From positions 248,001 through 312,000 of IMG/VR virus record IMGVR_UViG_3300032240_001991: a stretch of DNA of 64,000 bases, one strand, 5' to 3'. Under the pieces are notes generated by a model, which was given only the letters and a program-made list of their open reading frames with translations, had not been told where the DNA came from and did no database searches. The position numbers and the translations under genes were made by a program. Position 1 is the first letter of the stretch; each line of letters starts with the position of its first letter. Of the stretch, positions 2,652-50,555 are shown in pieces.

Positions 2652-2707
2652 CTTGCCTATATTATAACGATTGTGAAGCAAAAGTTGACAAATGTAAGGA
2701 GATAACT

Positions 2708-3408: not shown

Positions 3409-3415
3409 TAAATTC

Positions 3416-3425
3416 TAAATAAATA
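3416..3425 (+). promoter_or_regulatory. putative gp55-dependent late promoter (TAAATA core, doubled)
   Basis: TAAATAAATA in the intergenic gap; the same core recurs upstream of many structural genes (T4 late consensus TATAAATA). Confidence 0.5.
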
Positions 3426-3454
3426 TATGTGTAGTTTAAGGAATATTACACATA

Positions 3455-16553: not shown

Positions 16554-17222
16554 TCAACTTCCACTAGTTAAGCTTTGAATTCTAATCGTATAATCAATTT
16601 GTATTAATCTGTTTAATGCTTTCTGTACAGGATGAAAGATAACGTGCGTTAACAATAATCCTGTATTCTCGCCTGCAGGATTATAACTCTTAAGTCCTAA
16701 TTCATCAAAAACAAAGGTTCCGGATGAATCTGTAACATTAGCATCAAATGCTGGTTGTCCTTGAGGTTCTCCAAAGTCTAGTAAGCAACTTACTAATAGA
16801 TCTGAGTAGTATGTGCCAGCTACGTGTCTTACTTCCATAAAATTTCTTGAAGGATCAAGATCGTAAGGATTATTTGCATCAATAACTTTATAATATGTTT
16901 GATTATATAGAGATGCATTACTACCTACATTATTGGGTGTAAGGTATGTAATAATTCCTGTAGGATCAATTCTACTACCACCGTTGCCAAACGCCATTTC
17001 AGAGATAAAATTTTGACCTATATTACCAACTCCGCTTGCTAATGCGATAGAAAAATTTTCATAATGAATGGCGTTTCTTTTATCTACGTATACTTCTTTG
17101 GTTGTTGGATCAAATATTTTAATATGTCCCTGAAGGCGAATAGACCCTGTTTCATTAGGGTCTTTATTATTTTGACGGTTTTGTGTATTTTCAATCATTT
17201 TAGTACTCTTGATATTATCCAT
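16554..17222 (-). CDS. baseplate/tail structural protein (fibre-attachment type)
   Basis: GHIKIFD, MAFGNGG, FDELGL, THVIFHPVQK, IDYTIRIQ; located between the wedge and fibre genes. Confidence 0.65.
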   Translation of the reverse strand: MDNIKSTKMIENTQNRQNNKDPNETGSIRLQGHIKIFDPTTKEVYVDKRNAIHYENFSIALASGVGNIGQNFISEMAFGNGGSRIDPTGIITYLTPNNVGSNASLYNQTYYKVIDANNPYDLDPSRNFMEVRHVAGTYYSDLLVSCLLDFGEPQGQPAFDANVTDSSGTFVFDELGLKSYNPAGENTGLLLTHVIFHPVQKALNRLIQIDYTIRIQSLTSGS

Positions 17223-26200: not shown

Positions 26201-29200
26201 AATTTTCCATTTTTCTTTTCAACAATTATACCAGAAATTGAAACAAACTTAACCGGATTACTTACATTAAAATGTAAAGCGTAGTCTTCGTTAGGTAGTA
26301 AAACTCCTGGACTTACTGTATTTGGGCTAACTGAATCTATAGTAATCTCTAACTTATCTTTACTTAAAAATCCACCTGCTTTATAAAACAAATTAAAGTT
26401 AACTAATGATAAATCTTGTTTCAGTGCTGCTAGATAATCTAAAGACCTCTTTTTACCAGATTCAATCACCATCACACTATAACCAGATGAAAGAACAGTA
26501 TTTCCATTACTGTCTATATCACTATTAAGATAAACAATTGAAGGATTTAAAAATAAACTATTTTTACCGTACCTGTATTGTCCATCTACATTTTTAACTA
26601 GTCTAATAGGGTCAAACATTTTTGCAGCGTACGATGCTGGCTTAGATAGTGCTAAAATTATTTGCACTGCATACGGCCATATACTGCTACGTCTCCATGC
26701 AGTTTCAGCAGGACCATGATCTCCAAAAGACCAATCTTGATCTGGATTTAATATATTTTCATTCTCAGCAATACTACCCCAGAATCGTAAGTCAATCAAT
26801 TGACCACTATCATCAACTGGAATTATTTTACTTAACCCTGTTCTAACATATGTAGGATCTACTCCAGCACGTTCTCCGTAACGAATTAGTCCTGCTTCTA
26901 AATCTTCCCATAAGTTTAGGTTTCCAGAAGTATAAGGTGCAGGACCATATTCTGATTCCCACCAAGATGGTTTAATACTAAATCCTAACATTTCCCAAGG
27001 ATGTGTATTAGGGCGATCAGTATCAAAGTAAAATTTGTAGATACCTCTCCAATTTCCAGGAACTACAGAATTAAAAAAGTAATCTTGAGTAGATTTATAG
27101 TTATAAGTTTTATGGTTGTCTACGTTATAGTCAACATTTGACGAATAATCTATTCCGTAACTACTGGTCCATTTAATAAAATCTCCTTGTACAATATTAT
27201 AAATTTTATTATAGGAGTTTTTATTATCTCGAAATACTCCCGGAAGTATGTCATTGATATTAATTAAATCAGGATCATATGTTACTTTTATATTATTGAA
27301 CACTCTTCTTTCGTATTCTAAAAGTGCTAGGTCTCTAAAATCGTAATTGCCAATTGCGGCATTTGCAACTGTTGTATATGCCAGCGTAATACTACCATCG
27401 TGGCCTTGTATTACCATGTGGGCATTTACTGCATATGATTCGTCTTTATAAATCATAGGCACATATTTTGGATACAATCCTAATTTGCTAGGAGTTGGCG
27501 GAACGTAGGATCCTACGGTGGTAATATAATCAACCACCGTTATTATGTCACCCCGTGTTAAAGTTGCCGATATTACAACTACAGGGTCTACCAAATCAAA
27601 AGAATAATCAACTCCGTATACTAACAATGAACCGTTTAGGTATATCAATACTGATCTAGTTGAAAGCTGTGTAATATCAAATGTTGAAATTAAAGGATAT
27701 CTAACATTTCTAGCATCTGTAACTGTGTACTTTCTAGTAACATTATTAGTACCATATCCTAGCATATCACTTTGAGAATACGGAAACGTGTAATTTTTAT
27801 TTTTAATAATAGAACTTAACGCTTGATCTAAAACTCCGCTAGGTGATAAAGACGCATCAGATTGGGTGATAAATTTTATTAAATTTAACTTAAATTGATA
27901 ATAATCATTTGCAGTACTACGTGTTGCATTAATTAAATTATGTTCAATGTCAGTTATAAACAGTTGTGCAAACGACATTGGATTATATGATGTAATCATT
28001 CGTGTTCCGTATTTTGTAATAAACGGAAGACTCTTTAGATTACTTACACCAGGGAACACACCAACAAAATTTGGGTCTCGATTAACCATTGTTTGAACAT
28101 GATCACTTAATTCACTAAGAGTAAATTGAGAAATTTGTTCGTTCAGCGGATTGTTAGATGAATTTAAAGGAAATTCATATATACCGTTTTCGTTTGGTGA
28201 CGAAGCGGTATAACATTTAATTAAAACATTTGTTACACTAGTAAACGGTGTAACAAATTGAACATTTAAATTTGTTTTATCTATGACCAATGTATAATCT
28301 ACATCTAACATTAACTTTACATTATTAGAAAATACTTCTATAGTTAGATCTGTAATTAATGCGGCATTATCAAAAACAGTGATAGGTATTAAATTTCCAG
28401 TTGATACAACTTGAAATTGTTGCACCGGCATCTGATACGGCATTCCTTCTTCCCATACGTTCTTATAAGAATATCCAGTATCCTTATTAATTCGTAAGAA
28501 AGTCTTAGATGTAGAAACATCGGTTACTGTATTAGTACCTAATAGAGAAATATTACTTGTATTGAAATAATTTTCAAACAAATAGGATCCTTCAATCCCA
28601 ACATTTTTATAGTTTAACGGAAACCCTAAAACAGGATCAGCTATACCTGTACCTATTGAATATCCAAATAACTTATTTCCTAAAAAGATTGCATTGTAAT
28701 AAGTTTTATCGCTATAACTATGTCCAGTTTCATCAAATAGGTCAAAAAGTGGTGCTTGGTTTAGTACAGTTCTTTGTTGAGAAAGAACCCATTCTAATCC
28801 ATTAAACCAAAATTCCTTTCCTTGTCCCTTAGTTCCTAATAATATTACTGTACTATTACCAAAAATTGGTTCTATTATCTCGGCTAGATTAATCTTTTCA
28901 ACACCGTTAATTAAGCTTAACCCTACTTGAAATATTTTTCCACGAACTAGTGGATCAGGGTCTGCATTAAAAATAATGCGTTGGCCAGGTTCTAATGCAA
29001 CTCCGTCTACAGTATAACTTGTAGAACCTTCAATACTTGAAAATACATCGCTAGTTACTTGGTCAATTAAATCAACTGGATCTAAGCTGTTATTTCCAAA
29101 ATTGTAGAGTTGTATATCTGCTTCAAATTCAACAATAGGACGTCTTGCTCTTAAATTCTGTAAAAGTGTAGGAGTAACACCATTTGCCATTGCTGAAATT

Positions 29201-30419: not shown

Positions 30420-33400
30420 TTAGGAACTAGTTATCAGTGTTGTTACGTTAAGCTCAGTTGCTGTTAAACTACTGATAATTTGTATATCGTTAACTGTTGT
30501 CCCGCTTACAAAGATCTCATTGCTTTGGCAGGTTATCTGAAATAAGCTACCAAAACTGCTAGTTGAAGACTTAGGAACTATAACGAAGTTAGTTATATCT
30601 GGTGTCATTATGTTCATAACATAAGTGGTTAATTCACCAAAGTTAAATGTTTGACCAAAGTCCCAATTTTCAATTGCAAAAAAATCATTTATTGCAGATA
30701 GTATTCTTGTTTGAAGACTGGTTGTGCTCTCGGTACTTGAAGCACTTTGCACTGCTTTAAATGTTGCTTGTAAAGATGGCACTGCCTGACTTCCAAACAA
30801 TACTTTGTATCGAGCAGGATGATAGACTATCTCGTCGCTTACGCTCTTTATAGGTTCAAGAAGTGCAGAATAATTTGCTTCTAAGCTTTCTGATGTTGGC
30901 GGAAGAGGTTCAGTCCCTGATCCTGATAGCAACCAAGTTCTGTACTGCGTATCGTATTCGCTACTAAGCAAGTAAACATCCATAATATTCATTTTACTAG
31001 GATCTAAACGGCGTTCATTTCCTGTATTGTGAAGATAATGGAATTTTATTCCTTTTCGTCCTGATCTTGCATAAAACGAAGGTTGAAGAACAAAAGAATA
31101 CGTAGATGCTACCCAGCTTTGAACTACGTTGTCTTCATAAAAATAATACAATCTTCCGTTAATTCTTTCGTTAGTTGTAACCGATGCTGCATTTGGATAT
31201 GGATAAATTGATCCAGTAAACAAAGTATAACGAAGACCATCTGTTGAGACAACGAAATAGACAAATTTATCTTTAAATCCTGTCTGACCGTTAACACTGT
31301 CAGGAGCAACAATATTATCAAACATGTCTGGGTCATCAATTTGACCGCTTTGACTATGGTCGTAAAAACTTACAAGAACTTTCTTAGGTTCAATATACCC
31401 GTCAGGTTCAATTACCGCACTGTCAATTTGCCAAGAATAATCAATGCCTAATGCATTTGAATTAGTAGGATTTTTGTTTATTGAAAGAACATCAACTTTA
31501 TCTTTAATTACTGTATCAGTAACAAAATCATAATTTTTCTTAGAAGGATCAACAAAAAATGCTGTTTGTGCTTGACTTTCAAATAGATATTCAGTAACTC
31601 GATAACGTACTGAGTAGTTTTTTCCTGTCCACTGGAATGCAACTAGCCAGCTTGAATCTAGATTAGTATTTGATACATCTTTCTGATAAGTTAAACTAAA
31701 TCCGTTAACAAGATCTAAATTTGTATCGGCTATGATATACCAAGATCTAGTATCATTAGCAAACGCTAATCCAAAATTTCTCTTTGACAAAGCTAAATTG
31801 ACTATCTCTGTTTCTAAACTATAAGATAAAATATTATCAAAAGGAGGAATAACCTCATAAGGAACAGCACCAGATGGTACAGATCCAGATAAAATTACAG
31901 GACCGGTTCCGTCACTAAGATTTCCTAGTCCACTATTTGATCCGTCTCCAATTACATTAACAACCTTTGCCCATATATATTCTACAGTAGTGTCATCTGC
32001 GATTGCGGTTAAGCTTCCAGAAGGTGTAAAATATCCTAGCGGGCTAAAGAATTTAACTAAAGATCCTGGTTCAATGAAAATTAAATTATTGCTGCCAAAA
32101 GATCCTACCATTGCGGGATTATTATTAGCGTCAAGAAAATATCCTCTAGTTTGATTTGTAGTTAAATTTGATTGATTCCACGATAAGCTATATCCGCTTA
32201 GATCAATTCTAGGATAATTCTTTTTATCAAGATAGAAGTTCTTTAATCCAGGAGAATTTATAATAGGTTCTATCTTAGACTTAACTATTGAAAAAATTTC
32301 GTTTCTAGTTGTGAAAGAAAATTGAAAATTATATTCATTATTTTCTTTATAAAGTATTCCGTCACTAGCAAAGATATCTGTTGAGCTATAAGCTCCGCTT
32401 ACATCACTTAATTCATAATATTTGCTAATGCCGCTGCTAACTCTATTAATACTTTTAACTTTAACAATATCAGGACTTACATTAAGAGGAGCTATGTTAT
32501 AATCTTCCCCTGTTATCATTCTATTCTGTGTATAATATACCTGCGGCGCTTTTAATTTAATGTCCGCATTTGATTCACTTCCTGTAGAATTAGAAACTGT
32601 ATACTTAAGGCTAACAATTATTGTTAGAGAGTGCGATTGACCATATTGGTTAACATACGGTATTTGAACAGAAATGTTATTCATCTGTTCAGGTTTAATT
32701 GAATAAGTTAGTCCATTGCTTTGACGATAGTATAATTTAAATCCACCTTTAGGTAAATTTCCAAAACTTCCATCAGCAAAGGAAAGATCTATTTGATCAT
32801 TTTGCCTTGTTAGTACTGCATAGAAGTTTCTTTCATCAGCATTGATACTATTATAAATTACATTGTTGCCAGTTACTGCAGAAACTTTGGTCCATAGTGT
32901 TTGAGGAGTTAGGCCATCTTGACTTAACTGCCATAGCCAAACGTCAGTATTGTTAACACCGTTGACATTTACGCCAACTAATTCATTTGGTACTGGACTT
33001 GATATATTAAAATTAGAGCTAGACATTGAGCCTTGCTTAAAGTGTACGAAAAATCCTGTGTTTGAACTGCCACTTCCTTGATTATCATTTTGGAATATAA
33101 TTCCAAATTGGTTCTTTGGCTTAGGTGCTTCTTCGTAAACATAGCTTTCGCCTGCAAATGTAGAGGAAACTAATTCAAAAGCCATTTGCGTACCAGAAAT
33201 GTTTTTACTAAAGGTGTAAATTGGAATATCGTTATTACTAGAGTTAAGTTTGTAAGAGTCCGTAACTATCCCATTTATAACAGTAGATGCTACAGGCTTA
33301 CCAAATTGTGCAGGCTGTGCTATTGCAGCGTTCATTACAGATATAAATTGTTGATACCAATTATCGTTAGATGGATCGTTCCACCCAATGATACTGTTTG

Positions 33401-33809
33401 CAAGATTGATACCGTTAGAATCGATAACACTTTCAGTTGTTGAAACGGATGTAATTTTTAAAAATCCGCTAGCAGGAATGTTACGCTTAGGATTATAACT
33501 TATGAGCTGTGCTAATCTTAATATACTATCTCTATTTTCAGCAGTTTCAAGAAAGTTATTTCTAGCATTTAAATCTATACGAAAACTAAGATTTTGACCT
33601 AAGAATGCAATTAGGTCTACTAATGCAATAAACTCGCTGCTATCAATATAATCGTTAAACTCTTCAGGATAATTCTCTCTAAGATACGTAATCATAGTAC
33701 GACGCAGAGTATCAAAGTCATAACTCTTAAAGTCTGCGTTCTTAAAACTTTGATAAATCTTAGTCCAGTCTTCTGAAACTAACAGCTGATTTGTTGTTGA
33801 TGGTATCAT
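30420..33809 (-). CDS. baseplate wedge subunit, T4 gp6-like
   Basis: DFDTLR..MI.YL, D..ARNNFLETA..RDS+LRLA..+SYNPKR, QNRMITGEDY. Confidence 0.85.
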   Translation of the reverse strand: MIPSTTNQLLVSEDWTKIYQSFKNADFKSYDFDTLRRTMITYLRENYPEEFNDYIDSSEFIALVDLIAFLGQNLSFRIDLNARNNFLETAENRDSILRLAQLISYNPKRNIPASGFLKITSVSTTESVIDSNGINLANSIIGWNDPSNDNWYQQFISVMNAAIAQPAQFGKPVASTVINGIVTDSYKLNSSNNDIPIYTFSKNISGTQMAFELVSSTFAGESYVYEEAPKPKNQFGIIFQNDNQGSGSSNTGFFVHFKQGSMSSSNFNISSPVPNELVGVNVNGVNNTDVWLWQLSQDGLTPQTLWTKVSAVTGNNVIYNSINADERNFYAVLTRQNDQIDLSFADGSFGNLPKGGFKLYYRQSNGLTYSIKPEQMNNISVQIPYVNQYGQSHSLTIIVSLKYTVSNSTGSESNADIKLKAPQVYYTQNRMITGEDYNIAPLNVSPDIVKVKSINRVSSGISKYYELSDVSGAYSSTDIFASDGILYKENNEYNFQFSFTTRNEIFSIVKSKIEPIINSPGLKNFYLDKKNYPRIDLSGYSLSWNQSNLTTNQTRGYFLDANNNPAMVGSFGSNNLIFIEPGSLVKFFSPLGYFTPSGSLTAIADDTTVEYIWAKVVNVIGDGSNSGLGNLSDGTGPVILSGSVPSGAVPYEVIPPFDNILSYSLETEIVNLALSKRNFGLAFANDTRSWYIIADTNLDLVNGFSLTYQKDVSNTNLDSSWLVAFQWTGKNYSVRYRVTEYLFESQAQTAFFVDPSKKNYDFVTDTVIKDKVDVLSINKNPTNSNALGIDYSWQIDSAVIEPDGYIEPKKVLVSFYDHSQSGQIDDPDMFDNIVAPDSVNGQTGFKDKFVYFVVSTDGLRYTLFTGSIYPYPNAASVTTNERINGRLYYFYEDNVVQSWVASTYSFVLQPSFYARSGRKGIKFHYLHNTGNERRLDPSKMNIMDVYLLSSEYDTQYRTWLLSGSGTEPLPPTSESLEANYSALLEPIKSVSDEIVYHPARYKVLFGSQAVPSLQATFKAVQSASSTESTTSLQTRILSAINDFFAIENWDFGQTFNFGELTTYVMNIMTPDITNFVIVPKSSTSSFGSLFQITCQSNEIFVSGTTVNDIQIISSLTATELNVTTLITSS

Positions 33810-33863: not shown

Positions 33864-34304
33864 TTATTGAGGTACCAATCCAATCTCTTTATCAAAAGCC
33901 AATCTCATAGCAATAGTTTGATCAGAACCAATAACCTGTAGCGTTAACTCTAAAAGCATGCCGTATTCTTGCTCATCAATAAGAATTTGTATAGGTATTA
34001 CCCTAGGGTCTGACCTGCATATTCTATTAATATCGTCTGCTATAGCCTGTTTTACATCTTCAGTAAAAGGTTCAAAAATTAAAGACCAAATAATAGTACC
34101 ATATTTTGGCAGCATTACCCGCTCACCTTGTTTAGTATTGAACTGATTTAGGAAGTCCTGTTTTACTAACTCAAAATCATAAAGTGAAGTAGACCCTAAT
34201 GCGCCTACATTAATAGAGCTATATCCTTTGTAAAACTGACTTTCTTGCTTAGTATAGCTTGTATTATACTGGGCAGGATTTAATTCAATATTTTTATATG
34301 GCAT
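33864..34304 (-). CDS. baseplate wedge subunit gp25 (GPW/gp25 family)
   Basis: DFELVKQD..N.F.T..GERVM.P.YG..IW.LIFEP, DPRV; TAAATA (34309-34314) lies 4 nt before the ATG. Confidence 0.9.
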   Translation of the reverse strand: MPYKNIELNPAQYNTSYTKQESQFYKGYSSINVGALGSTSLYDFELVKQDFLNQFNTKQGERVMLPKYGTIIWSLIFEPFTEDVKQAIADDINRICRSDPRVIPIQILIDEQEYGMLLELTLQVIGSDQTIAMRLAFDKEIGLVPQ

Positions 34305-34311
34305 AAAGTAT

Positions 34312-35841
34312 TTATTTGCTGGCTGGATTAGCTGTAGGCTGCGTTATATCGGTTGCTGCAGGAGCAAATTTTTGAGGGTCAATATTTTCATGCTGATCCC
34401 ACGGTTCATGTGTTGGCACTCGTTGAAGAATAGTACTAATTCCGTCAGACTTATAAAATTTACCATTAGTCCAACCAGCATCAACTGTTCTATTTGGTAC
34501 AGTAAACAAGATTAACGGATCTGGCTGAGTCGCTATTTCTGCTGCTGTAGCTGCTTCTGCAGAAGGCCCATTAAAATGTATTTTTGCTGCCGTTGCAATT
34601 AAACTGCCAACGGAGCCTAAATGTGTAGAACCACCTGTGCTTATTCTTACATGACTTTCGCCCGAGAGATCCATACCCGCACCTGCAGTTTCTGAGATCC
34701 CTTTAGTAACAGATAGATTGTAATCTTCGCCTACTGCTAATTTTAATGTTTTTCCTACAGTTTCATCCTTAGTATTAGTAACTAATATTTTAGCAGAATC
34801 TCCTACAATTAAATTATAATTTCCTGTAATGTTTGTTTCCATCTTTCCGCTAGCACGAAAATTAATATTTCTTCCTGCTTCAATATTAACATCTCTATCT
34901 GCCCTAAAATTAAAATCTGTTTCTGTGTGAATGCTTACGCTATCATGTGCAAAAATATCTATCTTGCCATTTGATGTTAATTCTATCCATGCAGTTCCTT
35001 GGCTATTAGCGATATAAATTAAATCACTACTATTATGTAATAATATCTGGTGTCCGGTTCGTGTTCTAATACGAACTAATTCATTTTGTCCAGATTCGTC
35101 ACCATCGTCCATTACAAATTGAGAACCGCCTAATCTACTAACAGGAGTAATAACTTTATTTTTATATCCAATTGCGGCTTTTTTTCCGTTAGGATTAATA
35201 GGCCCAGGAGTGCTAATGCCAAAGACTTTGCTTGGTACTTCTCTTCTTGCAGAACTTGACGTTACTCCTCGGATATTATCAAGTAATAGGCCCTGGGCCA
35301 ACAATCTATCAGCAAAAGGATGAACAGGTTTTTTTTGAGAATTAGGACTTAATAAATCTTTTGCATTTCTTTTAAGAAATTCTGCTACAGGAAGATTTTT
35401 AGTACCATATTTTAATTCTTCTTCAGGCGTCAAATGAGAATTCTGACTAGCTGCTAGCCCGGGAATCATGTGATTTTGGAACTGATCTGGAAGACAACCT
35501 ATCCAATAACCTAGAGGATGTCCTTCAATGAACATTACTAAAACTTTAGTTCCTACGTCAGGAGGTACCATCCAGAACCCATAGCTCTTTTGTACATCAT
35601 TAAACTTTGTAGGATCAGTTCCTTCAAAATCTACGTTTGTAACTCCATAAAAAGGACTTACGTATTGAACAGGGAAAACTTCGTTTTCTAAGTTTGCATT
35701 ATTAGTAAAGCCTCTTTCAATTGCAACTTCAACAGCTCCCATATACGTAGGATCTTTTAAATTTGTAATTCTGCCAATATAGGTACCGGGTTTTGGTGTC
35801 CCTCCTCTAAATTGACTTCTAGTTCGTTGTTGTATTGGCAT
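34312..35841 (-). CDS. baseplate central spike, gp5/VgrG-like (OB fold plus beta-helix, no lysozyme domain seen)
   Basis: DPTYMGAVEV, YGFWMVPPDVGTKVLV.F..G, RIRTRTGHQI, beta-helix repeats, RVPTHEPW. Confidence 0.8.
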   Translation of the reverse strand: MPIQQRTRSQFRGGTPKPGTYIGRITNLKDPTYMGAVEVAIERGFTNNANLENEVFPVQYVSPFYGVTNVDFEGTDPTKFNDVQKSYGFWMVPPDVGTKVLVMFIEGHPLGYWIGCLPDQFQNHMIPGLAASQNSHLTPEEELKYGTKNLPVAEFLKRNAKDLLSPNSQKKPVHPFADRLLAQGLLLDNIRGVTSSSARREVPSKVFGISTPGPINPNGKKAAIGYKNKVITPVSRLGGSQFVMDDGDESGQNELVRIRTRTGHQILLHNSSDLIYIANSQGTAWIELTSNGKIDIFAHDSVSIHTETDFNFRADRDVNIEAGRNINFRASGKMETNITGNYNLIVGDSAKILVTNTKDETVGKTLKLAVGEDYNLSVTKGISETAGAGMDLSGESHVRISTGGSTHLGSVGSLIATAAKIHFNGPSAEAATAAEIATQPDPLILFTVPNRTVDAGWTNGKFYKSDGISTILQRVPTHEPWDQHENIDPQKFAPAATDITQPTANPASK

Positions 35842-35842: not shown

Positions 35843-38800
35843 TTATCCCGACAAATTGCTTTGAATTAAGGTTTTTAAAGGACTAAAGGCTGCATTACTG
35901 GCGCTTCCGTATTTACTAACTACCGACGATGCTACACTTGATACGTTAGGAACCCCAGAAGGAACAAACGAGCTAATATTATTTAAACTCGCTTCTATGC
36001 TAGGTGCCGAATTAGTTAACTTACCTAATCCAGCTTGTAAAGTAACAGCTTTGTCTGCAAGAGATGCTGCTCCAAGTGTAGAGTTTTTTACTAATGAAGG
36101 AACAGGCTGATTTTTTAATAAATCAGTAACTCCAGGAATAAGAGAAGCACCAGGAAGATTATCTAGTTTTCCGCCTCTATCTACAATATACTTAATGTCC
36201 TTAAGGTTAAACGCAGGAGCAGGTGCTGTTGCATCTGGTTGTGTAGCCGGAATATTAGGTAAATTAGCTGTTGGTATGTTATTGAAAATAAGACCTTTAT
36301 CAATTGCAGCTCCAAGATTAACATCGCTTGGTAAAGACTTAGCTGCGGAAGAAATTTGATTAACAATACTTGCCTGTAAATTTGGGCTTAACCCAGCTAA
36401 ACTACTAGGTGTAATACCTAATTGTGCTGCTAACGCCGCATCTTGTCCGTTTATTCCGTCTAATTTAGAAGCAGCTTGCGAAACTAACCCTGCAGCACTT
36501 TGCCCAAGGCTTCCTACTGCTGCAATTGCACTTTTTCCTAATGTCTCTACTGTTCCATTGCCTGTAGCTAGTAATGAACTTCCTAAATTTGTAGGAGTAA
36601 TTTTGCTTAATCCAACTGAATTAGCAGTTGCAGCAAGTTGATTAACTGATCCGCCCGCACTGTTAATATTGGTAGAAAACGTTGATAATCCAGAATTTGT
36701 TAATCTTAAGGCTGAAGAGACATTAGTTAACCCTTGTGATATAGGGCCAGAACCTTGACTTATAAAAGAACCCAATGCACTAGTTGCACCTGCTGCTAAA
36801 CTTGCAACTGAATTTACAAGAGATCCAATTGCCGTTCGGCCAGGAAATGACCCAGCTAACCCTCCTAAATTCCCTGGAATTAAATTTGACAATTGATTAG
36901 GTAATCCTGTAAGTGGTAGCCCTGCAGCAATCTGCGATATTAAATTATCAGCTGACGGTGTTACGGTTGACACTGGAGGAGTCGGCGTTGGAGTTGATGC
37001 CTTTAATGGATCAGGAACCGATCCAACTAGGGATATAGGTTTCTTTGTTGGTTCTTGATTAGTATCCTCAAGCTGGTAAGGCATTCTAATTAGTTGTAAT
37101 GTTTGTAGGAACTCTCCGTTTCTAAATTCGCTCTTTAAACTTATAACTCTAAATACTCCGCTGTACAAAGCAGACCTGTTATCAAAGTAAGCAAACCCTG
37201 TATCAGCATCAATATCTATAGGATTCCTAAACATAATTAAAATATGTATATCTCCCATATATGCATTAGCCTCGCCCTCTCCTGCGCTGCCATCAGGATT
37301 TGTTACTAGTTTTTGATTTCCTACTCCGTTAGTAACTAGGTAAAAGGGATCTCCAACAATTTGTAGTTCTGCTTGGCACTGATCAACATTTTCAAGTATT
37401 GCTTGATGCATGCCTTTAGCTAAATCAGCATAAGGATCTACCTGCGGGAATGTAGCGTTTTGATTTCCACTTTGTATTGGTGTACTTCTCAAAGCTGAAG
37501 CAGTAACTGGCGCATTGCCCATAGCACTATTATTAGGAGAACCTTCTGGCATAGATGCTTTAGAAGGATCTGTAGATTGAAGAGAATTTTCAGTTGCAGG
37601 CATACTAGGCTTGTTTCCCATAGCTCTAGGAATAGCCTGAAAGAATAATGTATTAAATTTTAAATTAAAGTTTCTAATGTCAACGTTTTGACCTGTATAA
37701 AAATAATTATATTCTCTAAGAACTGCTTGTTTGATGTTAGAAGTATCAACTACATCAGCAGGTCTTGGTTGAATTCTAGTATAATGCAGATCGTATTCTA
37801 TAACCACATATCGATAATGTAGGCAATCATGATTTCTTTTCTTATCAAAGATTCCTCTTTTTGTAATTTCGGCATGTACCATAAAATACTTAACCATGCC
37901 AGTATTAGGATCAATCCTAGATGCAAAATTGTTTAATATTTCTTTAGTGTAACTACTATCTCTAATAATTGAAGTAATACAATCATATATATCTGCACTC
38001 TTAGCAAATTGTATTACAGGCTTTGTAGGATCAAGCCTTACTACTTCTCCCTGCTCTGATTCTGGATTAGGAAATGCATAGACACTATTACTTTTTAACA
38101 ATTCAGCTACCGTTGCATTTGCTATTTTGTTTTTATTATATCCATCTTTATTAGTTAGATACTCAGGATCAATACCTGTATCTGATCTTGTTGGAAAAAC
38201 AATTTCGTAAGTATCGTACTTGTTTCTATCTTCTGAATTTCCTTCAGTCCCTATATCTGATTGAATTGTCTGATTTACACCATCAATAAAATTTATTAAA
38301 ATTTCTCCTACGCTACTGCCGGAAGTTTTAATATCATGATCTAAAATAGCAGGAGATCCCATAGCCTTTTCATTAAAAGGAACGCATTTACATCTGTACC
38401 TTGCACCAGATTCCGTTACATCAATATCAAGACCAGTAAATCCCATTACAAAGAATCTAGTAGAATTTGGAACTCTTTCTGCGTCTACGAGATCATCGCT
38501 ATCCTTGTATCCAATAAATTCCATTTTAAGAAGATAAGGACAATTTATGTAACTATCATGTCCGGCAGCAACTGCGGACACCTGCAGTGCTTCGATAAAT
38601 CCAGTCATACTGTATGGTTCAAAAACGTCAAATTCAATTTTAGTAGCAATACTCATGCTAGTTACTTCACCGCCACCAATTAAGGTTTCAAGGTGAACAT
38701 TGTCAATAAAAAAATCAAATCTTCCGGGGCTTTGAGCATTGAATCCGTCAACAAGCGCCTGAACATCTTGGGGTTGCATTAATCCGGTATCAGGATTAGC

Positions 38801-39112
38801 AGAAGTGACCGGTGTTCCTTGCTGAGGAGGCGCTCCCAAATCAGTTGGTGTCTGCATTCCAGACGAGCCTTTTCCTCCTGACTTTGCAATAACAAAATAA
38901 TCTTGATTAACAGTATATGTACTAGGATCTTCTAATGCTCTACTTTTTAAAGATGCCAATGTAAAAATATAATTGTATGATCGATAAGCGTTTAAGGGAT
39001 TTTTAGCATTGCTTCTAACTATTCCAGGCATCTTTGTTGTATTGTCAGCCTGCTTCGCTGGAGTTTTATTTTCAACTGTGGTTGAATTTGTTGTTTGCGA
39101 AACGTCGGCCAT
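35843..39112 (-). CDS. baseplate hub protein (gp27/gpD-like) with long low-complexity C-terminal extension
   Basis: NPL..Y.SYNY.FTL, F.V.EPYS..F, L.IVGDPFYL, YSGVFRV....SEF.NG.F.Q.L.L+R; adjacent to gp5 and gp53. Confidence 0.65.
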   Translation of the reverse strand: MADVSQTTNSTTVENKTPAKQADNTTKMPGIVRSNAKNPLNAYRSYNYIFTLASLKSRALEDPSTYTVNQDYFVIAKSGGKGSSGMQTPTDLGAPPQQGTPVTSANPDTGLMQPQDVQALVDGFNAQSPGRFDFFIDNVHLETLIGGGEVTSMSIATKIEFDVFEPYSMTGFIEALQVSAVAAGHDSYINCPYLLKMEFIGYKDSDDLVDAERVPNSTRFFVMGFTGLDIDVTESGARYRCKCVPFNEKAMGSPAILDHDIKTSGSSVGEILINFIDGVNQTIQSDIGTEGNSEDRNKYDTYEIVFPTRSDTGIDPEYLTNKDGYNKNKIANATVAELLKSNSVYAFPNPESEQGEVVRLDPTKPVIQFAKSADIYDCITSIIRDSSYTKEILNNFASRIDPNTGMVKYFMVHAEITKRGIFDKKRNHDCLHYRYVVIEYDLHYTRIQPRPADVVDTSNIKQAVLREYNYFYTGQNVDIRNFNLKFNTLFFQAIPRAMGNKPSMPATENSLQSTDPSKASMPEGSPNNSAMGNAPVTASALRSTPIQSGNQNATFPQVDPYADLAKGMHQAILENVDQCQAELQIVGDPFYLVTNGVGNQKLVTNPDGSAGEGEANAYMGDIHILIMFRNPIDIDADTGFAYFDNRSALYSGVFRVISLKSEFRNGEFLQTLQLIRMPYQLEDTNQEPTKKPISLVGSVPDPLKASTPTPTPPVSTVTPSADNLISQIAAGLPLTGLPNQLSNLIPGNLGGLAGSFPGRTAIGSLVNSVASLAAGATSALGSFISQGSGPISQGLTNVSSALRLTNSGLSTFSTNINSAGGSVNQLAATANSVGLSKITPTNLGSSLLATGNGTVETLGKSAIAAVGSLGQSAAGLVSQAASKLDGINGQDAALAAQLGITPSSLAGLSPNLQASIVNQISSAAKSLPSDVNLGAAIDKGLIFNNIPTANLPNIPATQPDATAPAPAFNLKDIKYIVDRGGKLDNLPGASLIPGVTDLLKNQPVPSLVKNSTLGAASLADKAVTLQAGLGKLTNSAPSIEASLNNISSFVPSGVPNVSSVASSVVSKYGSASNAAFSPLKTLIQSNLSG

Positions 39113-44792: not shown

Positions 44793-44973
44793 AAATTTAA
44801 AACAGGCACTTGAATCAGCTCTAGCAGAAGATGCTAAGTTTTCTGGCGGCAATAATGCAGCAGGAACACGAGCTCGTAAAGCGTTGGCAGAAGTTGGTAA
44901 ATTAGTTAAGGCACGCCGTAATGAAATTACCGCAGAAAAGAACGCTCGAAAGGATGCTAAGGCAACAAAGTAA
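44776..44973 (+). CDS. histone H1-like protein (Hc1 family)
   Basis: KFSGGNNAAGTRARKAL.E+.KL.K..R.E motif characteristic of Hc1-like proteins. Confidence 0.8.
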   Translation: MSNTLENLKQALESALAEDAKFSGGNNAAGTRARKALAEVGKLVKARRNEITAEKNARKDAKATK

Positions 44974-44974
44974 G

Positions 44975-45400
44975 TTGACCTGGCTGTATCAAGGCAAAGA
45001 AGTTACAGAACTTCCTGAGGATTGTGTTGGATTTATCTATTTGATTACTAATACAATCTCAGGAAGGATGTATGTTGGAAAAAAATTAGCAAAATTCTCA
45101 AAAACAAAATACAAAACAGTAAAACTTAAAAACGGCAACAAGAAAAGAAAGAAAATTAAAAGCAAAATAGAATCAGACTGGCAAACTTATTATGGCTCCT
45201 CAGACGAATTAAACGAAGACATTAAACAACTAGGCAACGAACATTTTAAACGCGAAATACTATACTACTGCACAAGTAAGGCACAAACTTCATATCTTGA
45301 AGCAAAAGAACAATTTGACAGGCGTGTTTTAGAAACAAATCAATACTATAACGGACATATACGTGTTCGTGTCCATGGCTCACACATAATCAAAAAATAA
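44975..45400 (+). CDS. stand-alone GIY-YIG (Seg-like) nuclease domain protein
   Basis: GFIYLITN..SGRMYVGKK, YYGSS, FKREIL, SYLE, YYNG; probable TTG start at 44975 (MTWLYQG) right after the Hc1 stop; no C-terminal NUMOD/HTH domain. Confidence 0.8.
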   Translation: MTWLYQGKEVTELPEDCVGFIYLITNTISGRMYVGKKLAKFSKTKYKTVKLKNGNKKRKKIKSKIESDWQTYYGSSDELNEDIKQLGNEHFKREILYYCTSKAQTSYLEAKEQFDRRVLETNQYYNGHIRVRVHGSHIIKK

Positions 45401-45870: not shown

Positions 45871-46731
45871 ATGCGTATTACCCAATTGCTTAATGAAGAA
45901 GAATTAGATGAAATAGGAATGAAAAGTATTGGCTCAGCTGCTGCTAAATTAGGCAGAGGTGCAGCCCTTGGAGTTGGAGCAGTAGCAGGTGGACTAAGAG
46001 GCATGGCTACCGCAGCTAAACAAGGGTATGATGTTGGCAAAGCTGCAACTGGACAAGGACGATTACCAGCAGCAGGAACAACATGGGGATTTGGGAATCA
46101 ATACGTAGGACCAGCAGGCGCACAGGCACCAAGCGGAGGTGGAGCTGCACAGCCAGCAGGTGGCCAAGCACCTAATTTACAAGATCAAATTAAAGATAAA
46201 CAAAAGCAGAGAGACGCAATTGATCAAGAAATTCAACAGTTAAGATCTCAAATGTCTGCTGCTCCGCAAGGACCTTCGGGCACTACAGGTACCACTGGAC
46301 CATCAAGTACTACAAATGCGCCAACCGGACCATCAAGTACTCCTAATGCACCAAATACACCGCCAGCACCTAATGCGCCAAATACACCGCCAGCACCTAA
46401 TGCACCAAATGCTCCAAAACCACCAAAGACTCCAAAACCTAAAGCACCGCCAGCACCTAATGCGCCAAATACACCGCCAGCACCTAATGCACCAAATGCT
46501 CCAAAACCACCAAAGACTCCAAAACCTAAAGCACCGCCAGCACCTAATGCGCCAAATACACCACCGGCACCAAAACCACCAAAGACTCCAAAGACTCCGC
46601 AGCCTAATCTCAATGTACAGCCTGGCGGAAAGAATGCGCCACTGGCACCAAATGCGCCAAAGACTCCGGGAACCTCTACAGCTGAGAGCTTTGATCGTTT
46701 ATTAGATTTGGTTAAGAAATTACAACGTTAA
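45871..46731 (+). CDS. Pro/Ala/Gly-rich low-complexity protein, probable internal virion protein
   Basis: MRITQLLNEEELDE N-terminus, short coiled coil, PNAPNTPPA / PKPPKTPKP repeats; late promoter and AGGA SD. Confidence 0.7.
   Translation: MRITQLLNEEELDEIGMKSIGSAAAKLGRGAALGVGAVAGGLRGMATAAKQGYDVGKAATGQGRLPAAGTTWGFGNQYVGPAGAQAPSGGGAAQPAGGQAPNLQDQIKDKQKQRDAIDQEIQQLRSQMSAAPQGPSGTTGTTGPSSTTNAPTGPSSTPNAPNTPPAPNAPNTPPAPNAPNAPKPPKTPKPKAPPAPNAPNTPPAPNAPNAPKPPKTPKPKAPPAPNAPNTPPAPKPPKTPKTPQPNLNVQPGGKNAPLAPNAPKTPGTSTAESFDRLLDLVKKLQR
46360..46562 (+). repeat. 87-nt perfect tandem repeat (about 2.3 copies) in coding sequence
   Basis: Units start at 46360, 46447 and 46534 and encode a 29-aa Pro-rich unit. 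Confidence 0.9.
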
Positions 46732-46958
46732 AAGTATGGTAATCCGGACTTATTAGTTGTTTCAAGATTTTCTTCAATGATCTTGGAGATTATTTCTCTG
46801 CTTTCGTAATCAAGCTGAAAGGCTTCATCAAAAGTCAAAGATCCTCGCATATGCCAGCACATTCTAAACAGTGCTTTCTTTAAATCTTTGCTTTCGTTTT
46901 CTAGGCCCTTAACGAGGTCTTCAATTTCAGGTATGGTTAGAGTTAAGAGCCTTGCCCG
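46728..46958 (-). CDS. -1 frame extension of the tail-assembly chaperone (not in ORF track)
   Basis: Open frame RARLLTLTIPEIEDLVKGLENESKDLKKALFRMCWHMRGSLTFDEAFQLDYESREIISKIIEENLETTNKSGLPYF*. It begins at slippery T TTT TTC (46964-46958), has no start codon or SD near its 5' end, and fills the gap exactly. Confidence 0.75.
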   Translation of the reverse strand, partial: RARLLTLTIPEIEDLVKGLENESKDLKKALFRMCWHMRGSLTFDEAFQLDYESREIISKIIEENLETTNKSGLPYF

Positions 46959-47830
46959 AAAAAATCTGAATTATCAAAGCTAATTGGCAACTCATAAGTT
47001 TCAGGAGCACCTAACGCAATAAGGTCAGGGGTAGATTTTATCAATAACGGTTTTAGATCGTTAGTCTTCTTAAGTTCTGTGATACGTTCTTGTACTTTCT
47101 GAAATACATCTTTATCAGCATTTTGAACAAACTCTTTAATAAACTCAGAATCTTCTACTACTGTTTCAGGTGTCTGTACAGCATAAATGCTGTCTGCAAC
47201 TAGTTCTACAGTGATATCAGTCATTTTATTAAAGCTTTGATTAAAGATTTCTAGTTTACGTTCGTCACTTAATGCTTCATCGTTAACAGCCTGCATTAAT
47301 CTTTGTGTTTCAAAAGTTTTTAAACTGGTTAAAGATAGATGTCTGTAAGTTAGTGGCCTAATAAAACAAGACAGCTGATCATTAATTACAACTTTTTCGT
47401 CCCAACGTGTATTATTTGATAGCTGATCTAAAATTAGTCTTAAGTCAACAATATGTGTTACTTGTTCTGTTGTATTAGGAACAGTATGTGTAACATCCAT
47501 TTTTTCGCCGTAAGTAGCAATTCTAATAGCAGCTAAGATAGAGTCAAGATCAATGTTAGGTGTTTTCCATGCATCTTTAATTGCAGGAATGCAGCTCTGA
47601 ATTACGTCAACAACTGCTTGACCATTGAGTAAAGCGTCTGGGGTTTTAAATGCTAATTCGTCTTTAGCAGTCATAGAGTAAACAGCCAATTCACCGTTGG
47701 CTGGCCATTCAATACTACCTTTTTCCCAATAGGCTCCATTACTTGGCAAGCGAACATAAATCTTAGCCTGCCTCATAAAACTAGTTAACGGGTTTGGTTT
47801 CTTAAATGTTGACTGCTGAAAATTACTCAC
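46943..47830 (-). CDS. baseplate hub / tail assembly chaperone (T4 gp26-like)
   Basis: NPL..FMRQ.KIY+.LPS.G, V..MTA.DE...KTPDALLNG, D.D.IL.AIR.ATYG; start moved to GTG 47830 (GGAG SD); ends D.SDFF. Confidence 0.75.
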   Translation of the reverse strand: MSNFQQSTFKKPNPLTSFMRQAKIYVRLPSNGAYWEKGSIEWPANGELAVYSMTAKDELAFKTPDALLNGQAVVDVIQSCIPAIKDAWKTPNIDLDSILAAIRIATYGEKMDVTHTVPNTTEQVTHIVDLRLILDQLSNNTRWDEKVVINDQLSCFIRPLTYRHLSLTSLKTFETQRLMQAVNDEALSDERKLEIFNQSFNKMTDITVELVADSIYAVQTPETVVEDSEFIKEFVQNADKDVFQKVQERITELKKTNDLKPLLIKSTPDLIALGAPETYELPISFDNSDFFGQGS

Positions 47831-47842
47831 ATGTAACTCCAA

Positions 47843-47912: not shown

Positions 47913-50555
47913 ATGAACGGCGCATCTGAGGCATTATTAGAAGAAATTTTAAGAGCTAATCAAGCCCAGGCGGCAGCCCTTAACAGACTAGCCAGTGGAG
48001 GTGGCGGAAGTGGAGGTGGCGGAGGAGCCGCAGCAGCTAACAAAGGCCTTCAAAGTTTAGGCGAAAGCTCCTTATCAGCAGTAGCGTCTTTGAATCCTCT
48101 ACGTGCAGGACTAAGTGCAGTAGCACTTGGAGTAAATGCAGCCAGTAAAGCTATAGGTGTTATGGCCGGAGCTACGGTTGGCGTTACATCAATATTAATT
48201 GAGTTTGGTAAAGCAGCAGCTAACGGTAAAGCCAGCATTTCTCAAGTTACAGGTGTATTAAGTGGATTACCGGGTCCATTTGGAATGATTGCAAGGGCAG
48301 CAACATTTGCTGCTCAGGTATTAGATACTAATGTTGCTACTCAACAAAAACTAGCAGCATCAGGAGCAAGTTTTGGCGGCAGTCTAACCCAGATGAGAGA
48401 CGCTGCTGCAAGAAGTTATCTAAGCTTAGATGAATTTGCAGGAGTGGTTGCTAAAAATGGCGATGTATTCCGCACTATGGGCGGTGATGTTCAAAGCGGT
48501 GTAAATCAATTTACTGCAATACAAGGCAAGTTAATGAGAGGTGAATATGCTAATAATCTAGCAACACTAGGTTATAGTATGAAAGACGCCGCAGATTTGA
48601 CTGCTAGCTACATGCGTGCCCAGGGTAGCATGAATAAACAAGGGTTACAAGATACTAATAAAGTTGCAGCAGGTGTTGCCCAGTATGCTCAAGAACTAAG
48701 CATGTTAAGTAGATTAACAGGTGAAAGTAGAGAAGCTCTGCAAAAGAAACTAGACGAAGAAAATCAAGAAGCACAATGGCAAGCTATGCTAGCTACTATG
48801 AGTCCTGAAAAAGCAGAGAAAATGAGACAAGGCATGCAGTTAGCCATGGCACAGGGAGGTAAAGGTGCAGTAGATGCCTTTAAGTCTATGGCTATGGGTT
48901 TGCCTCCAATGACTGAAGGTGCTAGATTGTATACTGCTACGCAGCAAGCTGGTGTAAAAACACTAGAAAAATATAATCAAAATGCAAATAATGCATCTCT
49001 TAGTACAGCACAAGCTGCGGCATTAAACAGAAAAGCATTAGCTGAACAGATAGCAACTGGTGCAAAAGATCAACAGAAGCTGCAAACAGTGTTAAGAGCT
49101 AGTGCGATGTCAGGCGGAGAATTAGCAAAGGTATTTGCTGACACCACTAAACTACAGACTTCATTTATGAAAGACGGTAAAATGATGTCAGAGAAGGAAA
49201 TTGAAGCTCAACTAGCTAAAATGGAAGCTGATTCAAAAAAATCAGACAGCGAAGCGTCCAATGCACAAGATATGCAAAAAGCTACAATGGATTTAACTAA
49301 TACCATTCTTGCTAAAATGATGCCGGCATTTAACTTCCTTTTAAACATTACTATGAAGACAGCAATGTTCCTTGGTACGTTATTTGATCCTATTATGAGT
49401 TTTGGAACTGACTTACTTAATAAAGTAATCATGCCTGCCTTTACAGAAATATTTGGAGCAATAGATCCCTCTGAAATAATGAAACCGTTTAAAGATTTTT
49501 TCAAAGGTCTAGTAGGCGGAGGAGGAATTGACTTCAAGGCCATTAAAGATACGCTAGTTACTATTCTTAAACCTATTGTTGCGTTCGGAAAAGAGTTGAT
49601 GTCGGCGATTAACTTTGAAGCAATTGGAAATTCGTTTCGAACTGTGTTTAGTAGTATCGGTAGATTGTTTACTTCTCTTTCAAATGTATTTTCAAAAGTA
49701 TTTGGTAGCACAGGAGGAGGAGAAGGATTTGCTACTAAGTTAGGTAATGCGGTTACAACATTTTTTACAACACTAGGTGACATTGTTGGTGGAATAATTG
49801 ACATTGTTACTTGGATTGTTGATAGTCCAGTTGGTACCTTTTTAATGACGACATTAAAAGCTGTGTTTGGATTTTTTATAGAAAGAATAGAGCAACTAGT
49901 TTCGTTTATTAGTGGTGTAGTTGATATAGTAAAAGGTATTGTTAAGTTTGTTAGCGGAGACTTTACAGGTGCATGGGAGAATATTAAAGGCGGATTAGGA
50001 AAAATAGTTACTTCTATTAAGAACTTTTTTGTCTCACTTGGTAAATTAATTTCAACAGTTTTTTCTGGTGGTTGGGAATTAATTAAAGGAGCCTTTATGG
50101 GTATACTAACATCCTTTATTGACGGCGTTAAGTCTATTGGAAAAGGAATTTGGAATTGGGTTACTGGTAAAAAAGAAGAAACGAAACCACCTGCTCCAAC
50201 ACCTGCTCCTGCTCCAACACCTGCCAAAGCTGCTCCTGCTAGAGCGGTTACTGCTCAACCAACTCCACCTGCTACCACACCCCCTGCTACGCCAGCGGAT
50301 CAAAAAGCTAAGGAAGATAGACAGGCTCAGGCACAGCAGCAAGCTGCTACTACAGCAGCAAAAGAGCAAGCAAAAGAACAAAAACAAGCCCAGGAGTCAA
50401 AACCAAAGACTCCGGATGAAATTATGCAAACTGAGTTAGGTACGTTAAATAAGAATATGGCTGCGTTACTTACATACGCTAGAGATACTCTAGGAGCTAC
50501 AAGAGATAACGTTAGTGCAATTAAAGCATTGAATAGAAATCTTTACCCGAGTTAA
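47913..50555 (+). CDS. tape measure protein
   Basis: 880 aa, Ala/Gly-rich and helical; LSMLSRLTGESREAL motif; amphipathic F/W-spaced repeats; adjacent to the frameshifting chaperone. Confidence 0.75.
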   Translation: MNGASEALLEEILRANQAQAAALNRLASGGGGSGGGGGAAAANKGLQSLGESSLSAVASLNPLRAGLSAVALGVNAASKAIGVMAGATVGVTSILIEFGKAAANGKASISQVTGVLSGLPGPFGMIARAATFAAQVLDTNVATQQKLAASGASFGGSLTQMRDAAARSYLSLDEFAGVVAKNGDVFRTMGGDVQSGVNQFTAIQGKLMRGEYANNLATLGYSMKDAADLTASYMRAQGSMNKQGLQDTNKVAAGVAQYAQELSMLSRLTGESREALQKKLDEENQEAQWQAMLATMSPEKAEKMRQGMQLAMAQGGKGAVDAFKSMAMGLPPMTEGARLYTATQQAGVKTLEKYNQNANNASLSTAQAAALNRKALAEQIATGAKDQQKLQTVLRASAMSGGELAKVFADTTKLQTSFMKDGKMMSEKEIEAQLAKMEADSKKSDSEASNAQDMQKATMDLTNTILAKMMPAFNFLLNITMKTAMFLGTLFDPIMSFGTDLLNKVIMPAFTEIFGAIDPSEIMKPFKDFFKGLVGGGGIDFKAIKDTLVTILKPIVAFGKELMSAINFEAIGNSFRTVFSSIGRLFTSLSNVFSKVFGSTGGGEGFATKLGNAVTTFFTTLGDIVGGIIDIVTWIVDSPVGTFLMTTLKAVFGFFIERIEQLVSFISGVVDIVKGIVKFVSGDFTGAWENIKGGLGKIVTSIKNFFVSLGKLISTVFSGGWELIKGAFMGILTSFIDGVKSIGKGIWNWVTGKKEETKPPAPTPAPAPTPAKAAPARAVTAQPTPPATTPPATPADQKAKEDRQAQAQQQAATTAAKEQAKEQKQAQESKPKTPDEIMQTELGTLNKNMAALLTYARDTLGATRDNVSAIKALNRNLYPS

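Follow-up and report, generated by a model that had tools for sequence, protein, structure and literature searches.

The DNA analyzed here is a 64,000-nucleotide stretch (hereafter the window) covering positions 248,001 to 312,000 of IMG/VR virus record IMGVR_UViG_3300032240_001991, which belongs to a jumbo T4-type phage. A minus-strand gene of the T4 gp26/gp51 family lies between a divergent tape-measure-like gene and a convergent gene of unknown function (Table 1). Four codons before its stop, the family gene carries an in-frame T_TTT_TTC heptamer, in which the first T is the third base of a GAT codon. The -1 frame then remains open for 76 sense codons, and the first ATG, GTG, or TTG in this -1 ORF is found only at codon 33. 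The predicted long product is 291 + 76 = 367 aa, with the junction ...DNSDFF-RARLL..., compared to 295 aa for the product of the 0 frame. These features agree with the preliminary description, which proposed a hidden programmed -1 frameshift at this position.

Table 1. Coordinates of the features at the locus (positions in the window)
Feature	Position	Strand	Description
Short-product gene (0 frame)	46943..47830	-	295 aa, PF12322 T4_baseplate; GTG start at 47830-47828, TAA stop at 46945-46943
Shine-Dalgarno-like sequence	47837..47840	-	GGAG, 6 nt upstream of the GTG start
Slippery heptamer	46958..46964	-	T_TTT_TTC, in phase X_XXY_YYZ, on the conserved Phe-Phe that ends the PF12322 domain
-1 frame extension	46728..46958	-	76 codons read from C46958, plus TAA at 46730-46728; C-terminal domain of the predicted long product
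Candidate stimulatory hairpin	46903..46952	-	Starts 5 nt after the heptamer; 5' arm AGGCUCUUAAC pairs with GUUAAGGGCCU
Divergent neighbor	47913..50555	+	880 aa, tape-measure-like; presumed client of the chaperone
Convergent neighbor	45871..46731	+	286 aa, function unknown; its stop overlaps the stop of the -1 ORF

Family assignment and predicted structure

The short product matches Pfam PF12322 with 41.6 bits against a cut-off of 24.5 (E 1.5e-10; residues 61-255 on profile positions 35-191 of 219) and phrog_150 "baseplate hub" (E 1e-12). It is the only PF12322 gene in the 326,658-base virus record. The body and the extension were modeled separately with AF2. The model of the body (pLDDT 90.6) matches predicted T4-like baseplate hub assembly proteins in BFVD (TM up to 0.82); in the Foldseek search the top hits, "Baseplate hub assembly protein, bacteriophage T4-like," were found at E 6e-22 and TM 0.81-0.84, with 60 hits at E <= 1e-3. 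The extension was predicted to form three helices (pLDDT 87), and its BFVD search gave only weak hits, the best meaningful one being the small ORF of Atu_ph07 itself. The two CxxC pairs (zinc-ribbon-like) seen in T4 gp26/gp51 and most relatives are missing in the window and its clade, where only C80 is invariant; this is a clade-level loss and does not bar family membership.

Blastn of the locus against GenBank phages found nothing (only protein-level relatives exist), direct BLASTP of the window protein against T4 gp26 gave no significant match, and a search for contigs encoding the exact protein returned no record. NCBIfam had no family for any of these proteins. The divergent neighbor matches the PHROG tape-measure families phrog_58 (E 1.7e-9) and phrog_4200 (E 7e-8) as well as phrog_14121, a virion structural protein family (E 5e-18), and its homologs in PA5oct and CBB are virion proteins by mass spectrometry. 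The convergent neighbor has no Pfam, PHROG, or NCBIfam match.

Conservation of the slippery heptamer and the -1 ORF

We first asked whether such a site could be expected by chance. Among ORFs of at least 150 codons in the window there are 122 in-frame X_XXY_YYZ heptamers, whose -1 read-through has a median of 7 codons and a 95th percentile of 34. The site described here is the maximum (76), the only one of 60 or more, and one of only three lying within 10 codons of the stop.

Among relatives, all 174 loci with this architecture, spanning 25-68% protein identity, keep an in-frame T_TTT_TTN at the same position (C at 121 loci, A at 27, T at 25, G at 1). In the clade of the window, 79 IMG/VR loci at 46-68% identity all have TTTTTTC followed by G. 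Named jumbo phages at 25-33% identity (Phosso, Atu_ph07, PA5oct, CBB, RaK2, 121Q, BF17, Yen9-03, Vibrio 2.275.O, XacN1, Xoo-sp13, RsoM2USA, RAS14) all have T_TTT_TTC or T_TTT_TTT. Of the cyanophage-like loci, 79 of 79 have T_TTT_TTN, even where the amino acids change to Phe-Leu, and the heptamer is also present in Syn1, phiN3, BUCT608, OLIVR6, AsFcp_1, and KVP40/PG216. Importantly, the codon before TTT ends in T in 174 of 174 loci, although ten different codons occur there. The conservation is far beyond what chance allows, although the loci are related by descent and these counts are not independent events. As a control, T4-like gene 26 sequences were collected with an alignment as the query, since a single sequence gave too few loci. 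In 22 unique sequences the same Phe-Phe is encoded by TTC TTT (15), TTC TTC (2), or TTT TTT after GAG (1), or is lost (4). None is slippery there, and gene 25 follows with its own ATG.

The same split at the same codon in 174 independent assemblies, and in cultured, finished phage genomes from many laboratories, effectively refutes an artifact or a decaying gene, in which a sequencing or assembly error or a recent frameshift mutation would have split a single 367-aa gene. Homopolymer runs are error-prone, and the only DNA run containing the sequence may be the source of the assembly itself.

A conserved -1 ORF of 60-90 codons follows the heptamer in these loci and usually lacks a usable start codon. 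The ORF is exactly 76 codons in all 77 complete loci of the clade of the window. There, the first ATG is at codon 7 or later in 57 of 70 unique sequences, and the -1 ORF of PA5oct has no ATG, GTG, or TTG at all. The stretch upstream of any start codon shows coding periodicity, with a codon-position entropy of 1.20/0.86/1.58 in codons 6-31 and no stops, whereas the other two frames carry about 3 stops each.

One could argue that the extension is an ordinary second gene, translated by termination-reinitiation coupling at the overlapping stop or from a noncanonical start, and that the T-run merely encodes a conserved Phe-Phe. Current annotations treat the cyanophage "gp51" and the small hypothetical ORFs in this way, and some records annotate a separate small gene. 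Furthermore, 12 of 70 clade sequences have an ATG in an ATGA overlap, so coupling could contribute in those; Phosso and Atu_ph07 also have such an ATG, Vibrio K441 has TAATG, and both K441 and Ackermannviridae SJ3 have the downstream ORF without a canonical heptamer. However, most loci have no start near the 5' end of the ORF, and periodicity and conservation begin right at the slip site. Phe-Phe coding alone does not explain the invariant T ending the preceding codon, and T4-like gp26 genes keep Phe-Phe with nonslippery codons. Two separately translated genes are therefore considered unlikely.

RNA structure and the nature of the proposed slip

The candidate hairpin downstream of the heptamer has a predicted stability of -14.5 kcal/mol, which is modest in the window itself (z -0.8 to -1.9), and several windows of the same gene fold better. 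RNAalifold on the stacked clade alignment found no fixed-register consensus, and the stability was instead tested for each sequence. In the clade, the 85 nt after the slip site are the most stable window of the whole gene in 54% of 69 sequences (mean -21.8 against -12.4 kcal/mol). The cyanophage-type loci show no such excess; their stop codon abuts the site.

A shift in the RNA rather than on the ribosome was also considered, in which RNA polymerase stutters on the T6-T7 run and a fraction of mRNAs with one fewer or two extra U encodes the fusion. A homopolymeric run is present in every locus, and 25 of 174 have seven or more T. Yet the run is only six T in 149 of 174 loci, while efficient transcriptional slippage in bacteria seems to require, in general, runs of about 8-9 or more. 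What is conserved is the phase-specific X_XXY_YYZ pattern, together with a candidate downstream hairpin or an adjacent stop, which are hallmarks of ribosomal slippage. Transcriptional slippage thus appears improbable, although only DNA metagenome contigs, and no RNA, were found to contain the sequence.

Relationship to T4 gp26 and gp51

T4 gp26 and gp51 are paralogs, both matching PF12322 over its full length (E 9e-64 and 4e-52). The domain ends at the Phe-Phe in gp26 or at a Val-Phe in gp51, and gp51 then continues in frame for 48 aa. Importantly, a gp51 HMM aligns as one domain across the frameshift junction of the fused products of Melnitz (23-276, junction 231), Syn1 (23-284, junction 237), KVP40 (201-322, junction 281), and AsFcp_1 (124-304, junction 257). 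When the extensions were compared to gp51 tails with hhalign, the cyanophage type gave a probability of 96% (E 2e-9), whereas the jumbo type, to which the window belongs, gave a collinear alignment with only a moderate probability of 67% (E 5e-5), and small-ORF homologs of the window extension carry no precomputed hit to PF28602, the Pfam family on gp51 homologs, or any other precomputed Pfam hit. Hhalign of single T4 sequences against the alignments was uninformative, with probability under 10% or misregistered on the internal repeat, and family profiles were needed. These comparisons suggest that the short product corresponds to gp26 and the long product to gp51, although the body in the window is about 85 aa longer than in T4 and the extension has 76 aa against 48 aa.

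Consistently, copy number is linked to the slippery site. T4 has two PF12322 genes, which are divergently transcribed and without a slippery site, whereas KVP40, Syn1, PA5oct, AsFcp_1, and the record of the window have one each. In a phylogenetic tree, T4-type gp26 and gp51 are sister clades (support 92/75) nested among frameshift-type genes. The support for this grouping is only moderate and the tree is midpoint-rooted. The one-gene, frameshift arrangement looks ancestral in T4-related phages, and the T4 subfamily appears to have replaced it by duplication into genes 26 (short) and 51 (long, in frame). If so, this would be a natural example of a frameshift being replaced by gene duplication.

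Cyanophage and KVP40 "gp51" are only about 20% of the length of T4 gp51, and Aeh1 "lacks" it (Sullivan et al. 2010, PMC3037559), which is what a frameshift extension predicts. These small annotated genes are the same -1 ORF described here; they lie directly after gp26 and are similar to the C-terminus of T4 gp51. They have been treated as free-standing truncated genes lacking the first ~200 residues, whereas our evidence indicates that those residues come from gp26 through the frameshift. We found no publication or annotation of this frameshift, and a full-text search for the heptamer strings returned only noise. Hundreds of public phage genomes, including abundant marine cyanophages and therapy-candidate jumbo phages, probably misannotate this locus.

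Proposed expression and role

Taken together, the comparative evidence strongly supports a programmed -1 frameshift, and it is very likely, albeit without experimental demonstration, that one gene gives two proteins. Most ribosomes would read the PF12322 gene to its stop and make the 295-aa protein. A minority would slip back one base on U_UUU_UUC, when tRNA-Phe sits on UUU in the P site and on UUC in the A site and both can re-pair on UUU, and continue in the -1 frame to make the 367-aa protein, with the same body plus a small C-terminal domain predicted to have three helices. The hairpin, and in many relatives a 0-frame stop codon 0-1 codons after the site, may pause the ribosome. T4 gp26 and gp51 are hub-assembly chaperones, and gp51 is absent from virions (PMC3004832). 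The CBB virion mass-spectrometry table lists the tape-measure-like CBB_251 but not the gp26-like CBB_250 (PMC5259590). By analogy with T4 genetics, we infer that both forms act as nonvirion chaperones that build the central baseplate hub around the tape-measure-like protein, with the rare long form supplying the activity that T4 provides from gene 51.

The preliminary description regarded the gene as a gp26-like equivalent of lambda G/GT in this lineage, and noted that T4 itself is not known to use such a frameshift. The G/GT reading holds as an analogy of logic and role, with two nested products and an inferred fixed low ratio of long to short form set by translation, but three corrections are needed. 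First, the protein is not a relative of lambda G/GT. No TAC family matches in Pfam, PHROGs, or NCBIfam, Foldseek against the PDB gave a best E of 0.45, and a VIA-align wide search found only generic helical hairpins at Z < 8. Second, the arrangement is not special to this lineage but is conserved in most T4-related lineages sampled, apart from the T4 subfamily and the two records without a canonical site. Third, T4 does have the equivalent, made from two paralogous genes, so the gene in the window is as much gp51-like as gp26-like.

In a broader reading, which is probable but less secure, the frameshift is an ancient, near-universal feature of T4-related phages, including RaK2/PA5oct/Atu_ph07-type jumbo phages, marine cyanophages, and KVP40-like and Aeh1-like phages, and T4 genes 26 and 51 are the duplicated, hard-wired versions of its two products. 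Tail-chaperone frameshifting is one of the most conserved recoding events in phages, and T4-type phages were the conspicuous gap. Gp26/gp51 would then be the long-missing functional counterpart of lambda G/GT in these phages, built on an unrelated fold, and two poorly understood T4 genes would be the short and long forms of one ancestral gene.

Comparison with other tail chaperone frameshifts

In lambda (Xu, Hendrix and Duda 2004), the -1 slip likewise appears to occur on a canonical heptamer a few codons before the stop of the first ORF, giving a long product with an extra C-terminal domain. The heptamer there is G_GGA_AAG, and the body of the window protein is about twice the size of typical TACs. 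The P2 E / E+E' pair (Christie et al. 2002), from a contractile-tail phage, appears to use a heptamer of the same T_TTT_TTN type, T_TTT_TTG, and its nested products appear to be needed for tail assembly; it belongs, however, to a different protein family and size, and probably sits between the tube and tape-measure genes in one operon. In the window, the gene is adjacent to, but divergent from, the tape-measure-like gene and not upstream of it. In the cyanophage, KVP40, phiN3, and OLIVR6 lineages, the order is a tube-like gene (phrog_45), gp26, the -1 ORF, and then a large protein of unproven identity, which may mirror V-G-T-H of lambda.

Slippery site and its -1 reading frame

The gene of interest is initiated at a GTG codon with GGAG six bases upstream, ends ...GAT TTT TTC GGG CAA GGC TCT TAA, and encodes 295 aa. 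The T_TTT_TTC heptamer lies in the X_XXY_YYZ phase, and the -1 frame stays open for 76 codons after it, which predicts a 367-aa product with the junction ...DNSDFF|RARLL. The coordinates, sequence and product sizes given in the preliminary description, which had proposed a hidden -1 frameshift in this gene, are all correct. To compare this site with others in the window, the in-frame heptamers of this type in long ORFs were collected. Among 122 such heptamers, the -1 read-through has a median of 7 codons and a 95th percentile of 34, whereas the present site, at 76 codons, is the longest and the only one of 60 or more. Another in-frame heptamer, T_TTA_AAA, lies 9 codons before the stop of a 1089-aa ORF with the -1 frame open for 38 codons, which is close to the 95th percentile expected by chance.

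Coordinates of features in the window and in two related loci
Feature	Sequence	Coordinates	Strand
PF12322 gene, 295 aa (GTG at 47830)	window	46943-47830	-
Slippery heptamer T_TTT_TTC	window	46964-46958	-
-1 frame, 76 codons, from C46958 to TAA 46730-46728	window	46958-46728	-
Hairpin starting 5 nt after the heptamer	window	46952-46903	-
Tape-measure-like protein, 880 aa, divergent from the PF12322 gene	window	47913-50555	
ORF of 4396 aa	window	17215-30405	-
ORF of 1129 aa	window	30420-33809	-
gp25-like baseplate gene	window	33864-34304	
gp5-like baseplate gene	window	34312-35841	
ORF of 1089 aa	window	35843-39112	-
In-frame T_TTA_AAA in the 1089-aa ORF	window	35873-35879	-
SegE-like GIY-YIG homing endonuclease	window	44921-45400	+
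HNH endonuclease gene	window	5273-6538	+
Gene 26', internal start in gene 26	T4 locus	3803-4090	-
Large protein downstream of the -1 ORF	Syn1 locus	2392-3711	

The protein matches Pfam PF12322 (T4_baseplate) above the cut-off, and also phrog_150 "baseplate hub." Its neighbors include the tape-measure-like protein, the T4-type portal, prohead protease and major head protein, a gp46-like nuclease, a gp5-like hub protein and a gp25-like wedge protein. Three very large ORFs lie beside the gp25-like and gp5-like genes. The 326,658-base virus record that contains the window holds only this one PF12322 gene. The nearest named relatives, at 25-33% identity, are jumbo phages, i.e., Phosso, Atu_ph07, PA5oct, CBB, GAP32, 121Q, RaK2 and others.

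Conservation of the slippery site

The slippery site is conserved at the nucleotide level. Among 79 IMG/VR loci of the window's clade (46-68% identity), every one has TTTTTTC followed by G at the same place, the 0-frame stop comes 1 or 4 codons later, and in every complete case the -1 ORF is exactly 76 codons with a conserved sequence. The named jumbo phages all have T_TTT_TTC or T_TTT_TTT followed by a -1 ORF of 68-90 codons. A second family scan, seeded from the Kyanoviridae-type phage Melnitz, gave 79 evaluable loci, all of which have T_TTT_TTN (C 28, A 28, T 22, G 1) 0-1 codons before the stop and a -1 ORF of 62-67 codons. The T-run in these loci is kept even where the amino acids change from Phe-Phe to Phe-Leu. 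The same arrangement was observed in Syn1, phiN3, BUCT608, OLIVR6, the Aeh1-like AsFcp_1 and KVP40/PG216. Importantly, over all 174 such loci the codon before TTT is one of ten different codons but always ends in T. A shift arising by transcriptional slippage on the short T-run is unlikely, although it is not excluded.

As a negative control, we examined T4-like gene 26. T4 gene 26 ends ...GAG TTC TTT GAG TTA CTA TAA, and gene 25 starts at the stop. Among 22 unique T4-like gene 26 sequences, the homologous Phe-Phe is encoded as TTC TTT in 15, as TTC TTC in 2 and as TTT TTT after GAG in 1, and it is lost altogether in 4. None is slippery at that position. Interestingly, T4 additionally annotates gene 26', an in-frame internal start giving the C-terminal 95 aa of gp26, and thus already makes nested products from this gene by another route.

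PA5oct's -1 ORF has no ATG, GTG or TTG at all, the first start codon in the window is at codon 33, and in the clade the first ATG is at codon 7 or later in 57 of 70 unique sequences. Furthermore, codons 6-31 already show -1-frame periodicity, with positional entropy of 1.20/0.86/1.58 and no stops, whereas the other two frames carry about three stops each. An AF2 model of the 76 residues predicts a confident three-helix domain (pLDDT 87). These observations indicate that the -1 ORF is not a free-standing gene in most lineages. Nevertheless, a minority of loci have an ATGA overlap that could allow coupling, and two lineages, Ackermannviridae SJ3 (a Salmonella phage) and Vibrio phage K441, have a homologous -1 ORF after the PF12322 gene without a canonical heptamer (GAG ATT TTC ATT TAA and CTT TTC AAG TAATG, respectively). 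The latter could be explained by coupling, by a four-base T_TTC P-site slip, or by a non-canonical start.

The sequence downstream of the heptamer was also examined for RNA structure that may stimulate frameshifting. In the window, the hairpin is modest at -14.5 kcal/mol. Across the clade, the 85 nt after the site are the most stable window of the whole gene in 54% of 69 sequences, with a mean of -21.8 against -12.4 kcal/mol. Different sequences use different 3' partners, so no fixed-register consensus emerges. Cyanophage-type loci show no such excess of stability, and there the stop codon abuts the heptamer.

Relationship of the two predicted products to gp26 and gp51

T4 gp26 (208 aa) and gp51 (249 aa) both match PF12322 over its full length, thus they are paralogues. 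The domain ends at gp26's Phe-Phe, two to three residues before its stop, and at gp51's Val-Phe, after which gp51 continues in frame for 48 residues. Homologues carry a second Pfam family, PF28602, on this tail. A gp51 HMM aligns as a single domain across the frameshift junction of conceptually fused products from Melnitz, Syn1, KVP40, AsFcp_1, BUCT608 and phiN3. Profile-profile comparison against gp51 tails gave a probability of 96% (E 2e-9) for cyanophage-type extensions, and a lower probability of 67% (E 5e-5), with collinear alignment, for jumbo-type extensions including that of the window. Consistently, T4 has two PF12322 genes, whereas KVP40, Syn1, PA5oct, AsFcp_1 and the window's record have one each. 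In a maximum-likelihood tree, T4-type gp26 and gp51 are each monophyletic and are sisters (support 92/75), and they are nested among frameshift-type genes, which lie on both sides of the midpoint root. Thus, the short product corresponds to gp26 and the long product likely to gp51, and the single-gene frameshift arrangement is probably ancestral, with the reservation that all of this evidence is comparative and that frameshifting itself is inferred.

Cyanophage and KVP40 gp51 were previously noted to be only about 20% of T4's length, missing the first ~200 residues, and Aeh1 was noted to lack gp51, but a frameshift was not proposed (Sullivan et al. 2010, PMC3037559). None of the GenBank records inspected annotates a joined CDS at this locus. 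No report of the frameshift was found in the full texts searched, although an earlier report cannot be excluded because most subscription journals fell outside that search.

Functional context and wider family

The gp26 and gp51 proteins are listed as hub assembly chaperones, and gp51 is stated to be required for assembly but absent from the particle (Leiman et al., PMC3004832). NCBI likewise names gp26 a "baseplate hub assembly chaperone." The CBB virion proteome table contains the tape-measure-like CBB_251 but not the gp26-like CBB_250. In several lineages the gene order is a tube-like gene (phrog_45), gp26, the -1 extension and then a large protein, which mirrors lambda V-G-T-H, although the tape-measure identity of those large proteins is not established. 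The large proteins just downstream of the -1 ORF in cyanophage, phiN3, BUCT608, OLIVR6 and KVP40 lineages are of unknown function in PHROGs, and the Syn1 protein has an endolysin-like stretch. They are candidates for the undetected tape measure (gp29 equivalent) of these phages. Together, the chaperone assignments, the virion proteome and the gene order support the G/GT-like logic suggested in the preliminary description. The family, however, is unrelated to known tail assembly chaperones. No such Pfam, PHROG or NCBIfam family matches.

The predicted model of the body (pLDDT 90.6) has no related solved structure, although it does match predicted T4-like hub assembly proteins. In BFVD, the predicted fold also matches uncharacterized proteins of about 450-550 aa in phiKZ-like jumbo phages (Erwinia Special G, Ralstonia RSF1 and RP12) and proteins of Bacillus phages SP-15 and BCD7. 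The chaperone family may therefore be much wider than PF12322. The window's clade has lost both CxxC pairs (zinc-ribbon-like motifs) that T4 gp26/gp51, cyanophages and the named jumbo phages keep, and the window has TVPNT at residues 116-120 and LGAPET at residues 273-278 at those positions. The SegE-like GIY-YIG homing endonuclease sits between the gp46-like nuclease gene and a 286-aa unknown ORF, and the HNH endonuclease gene lies further upstream.
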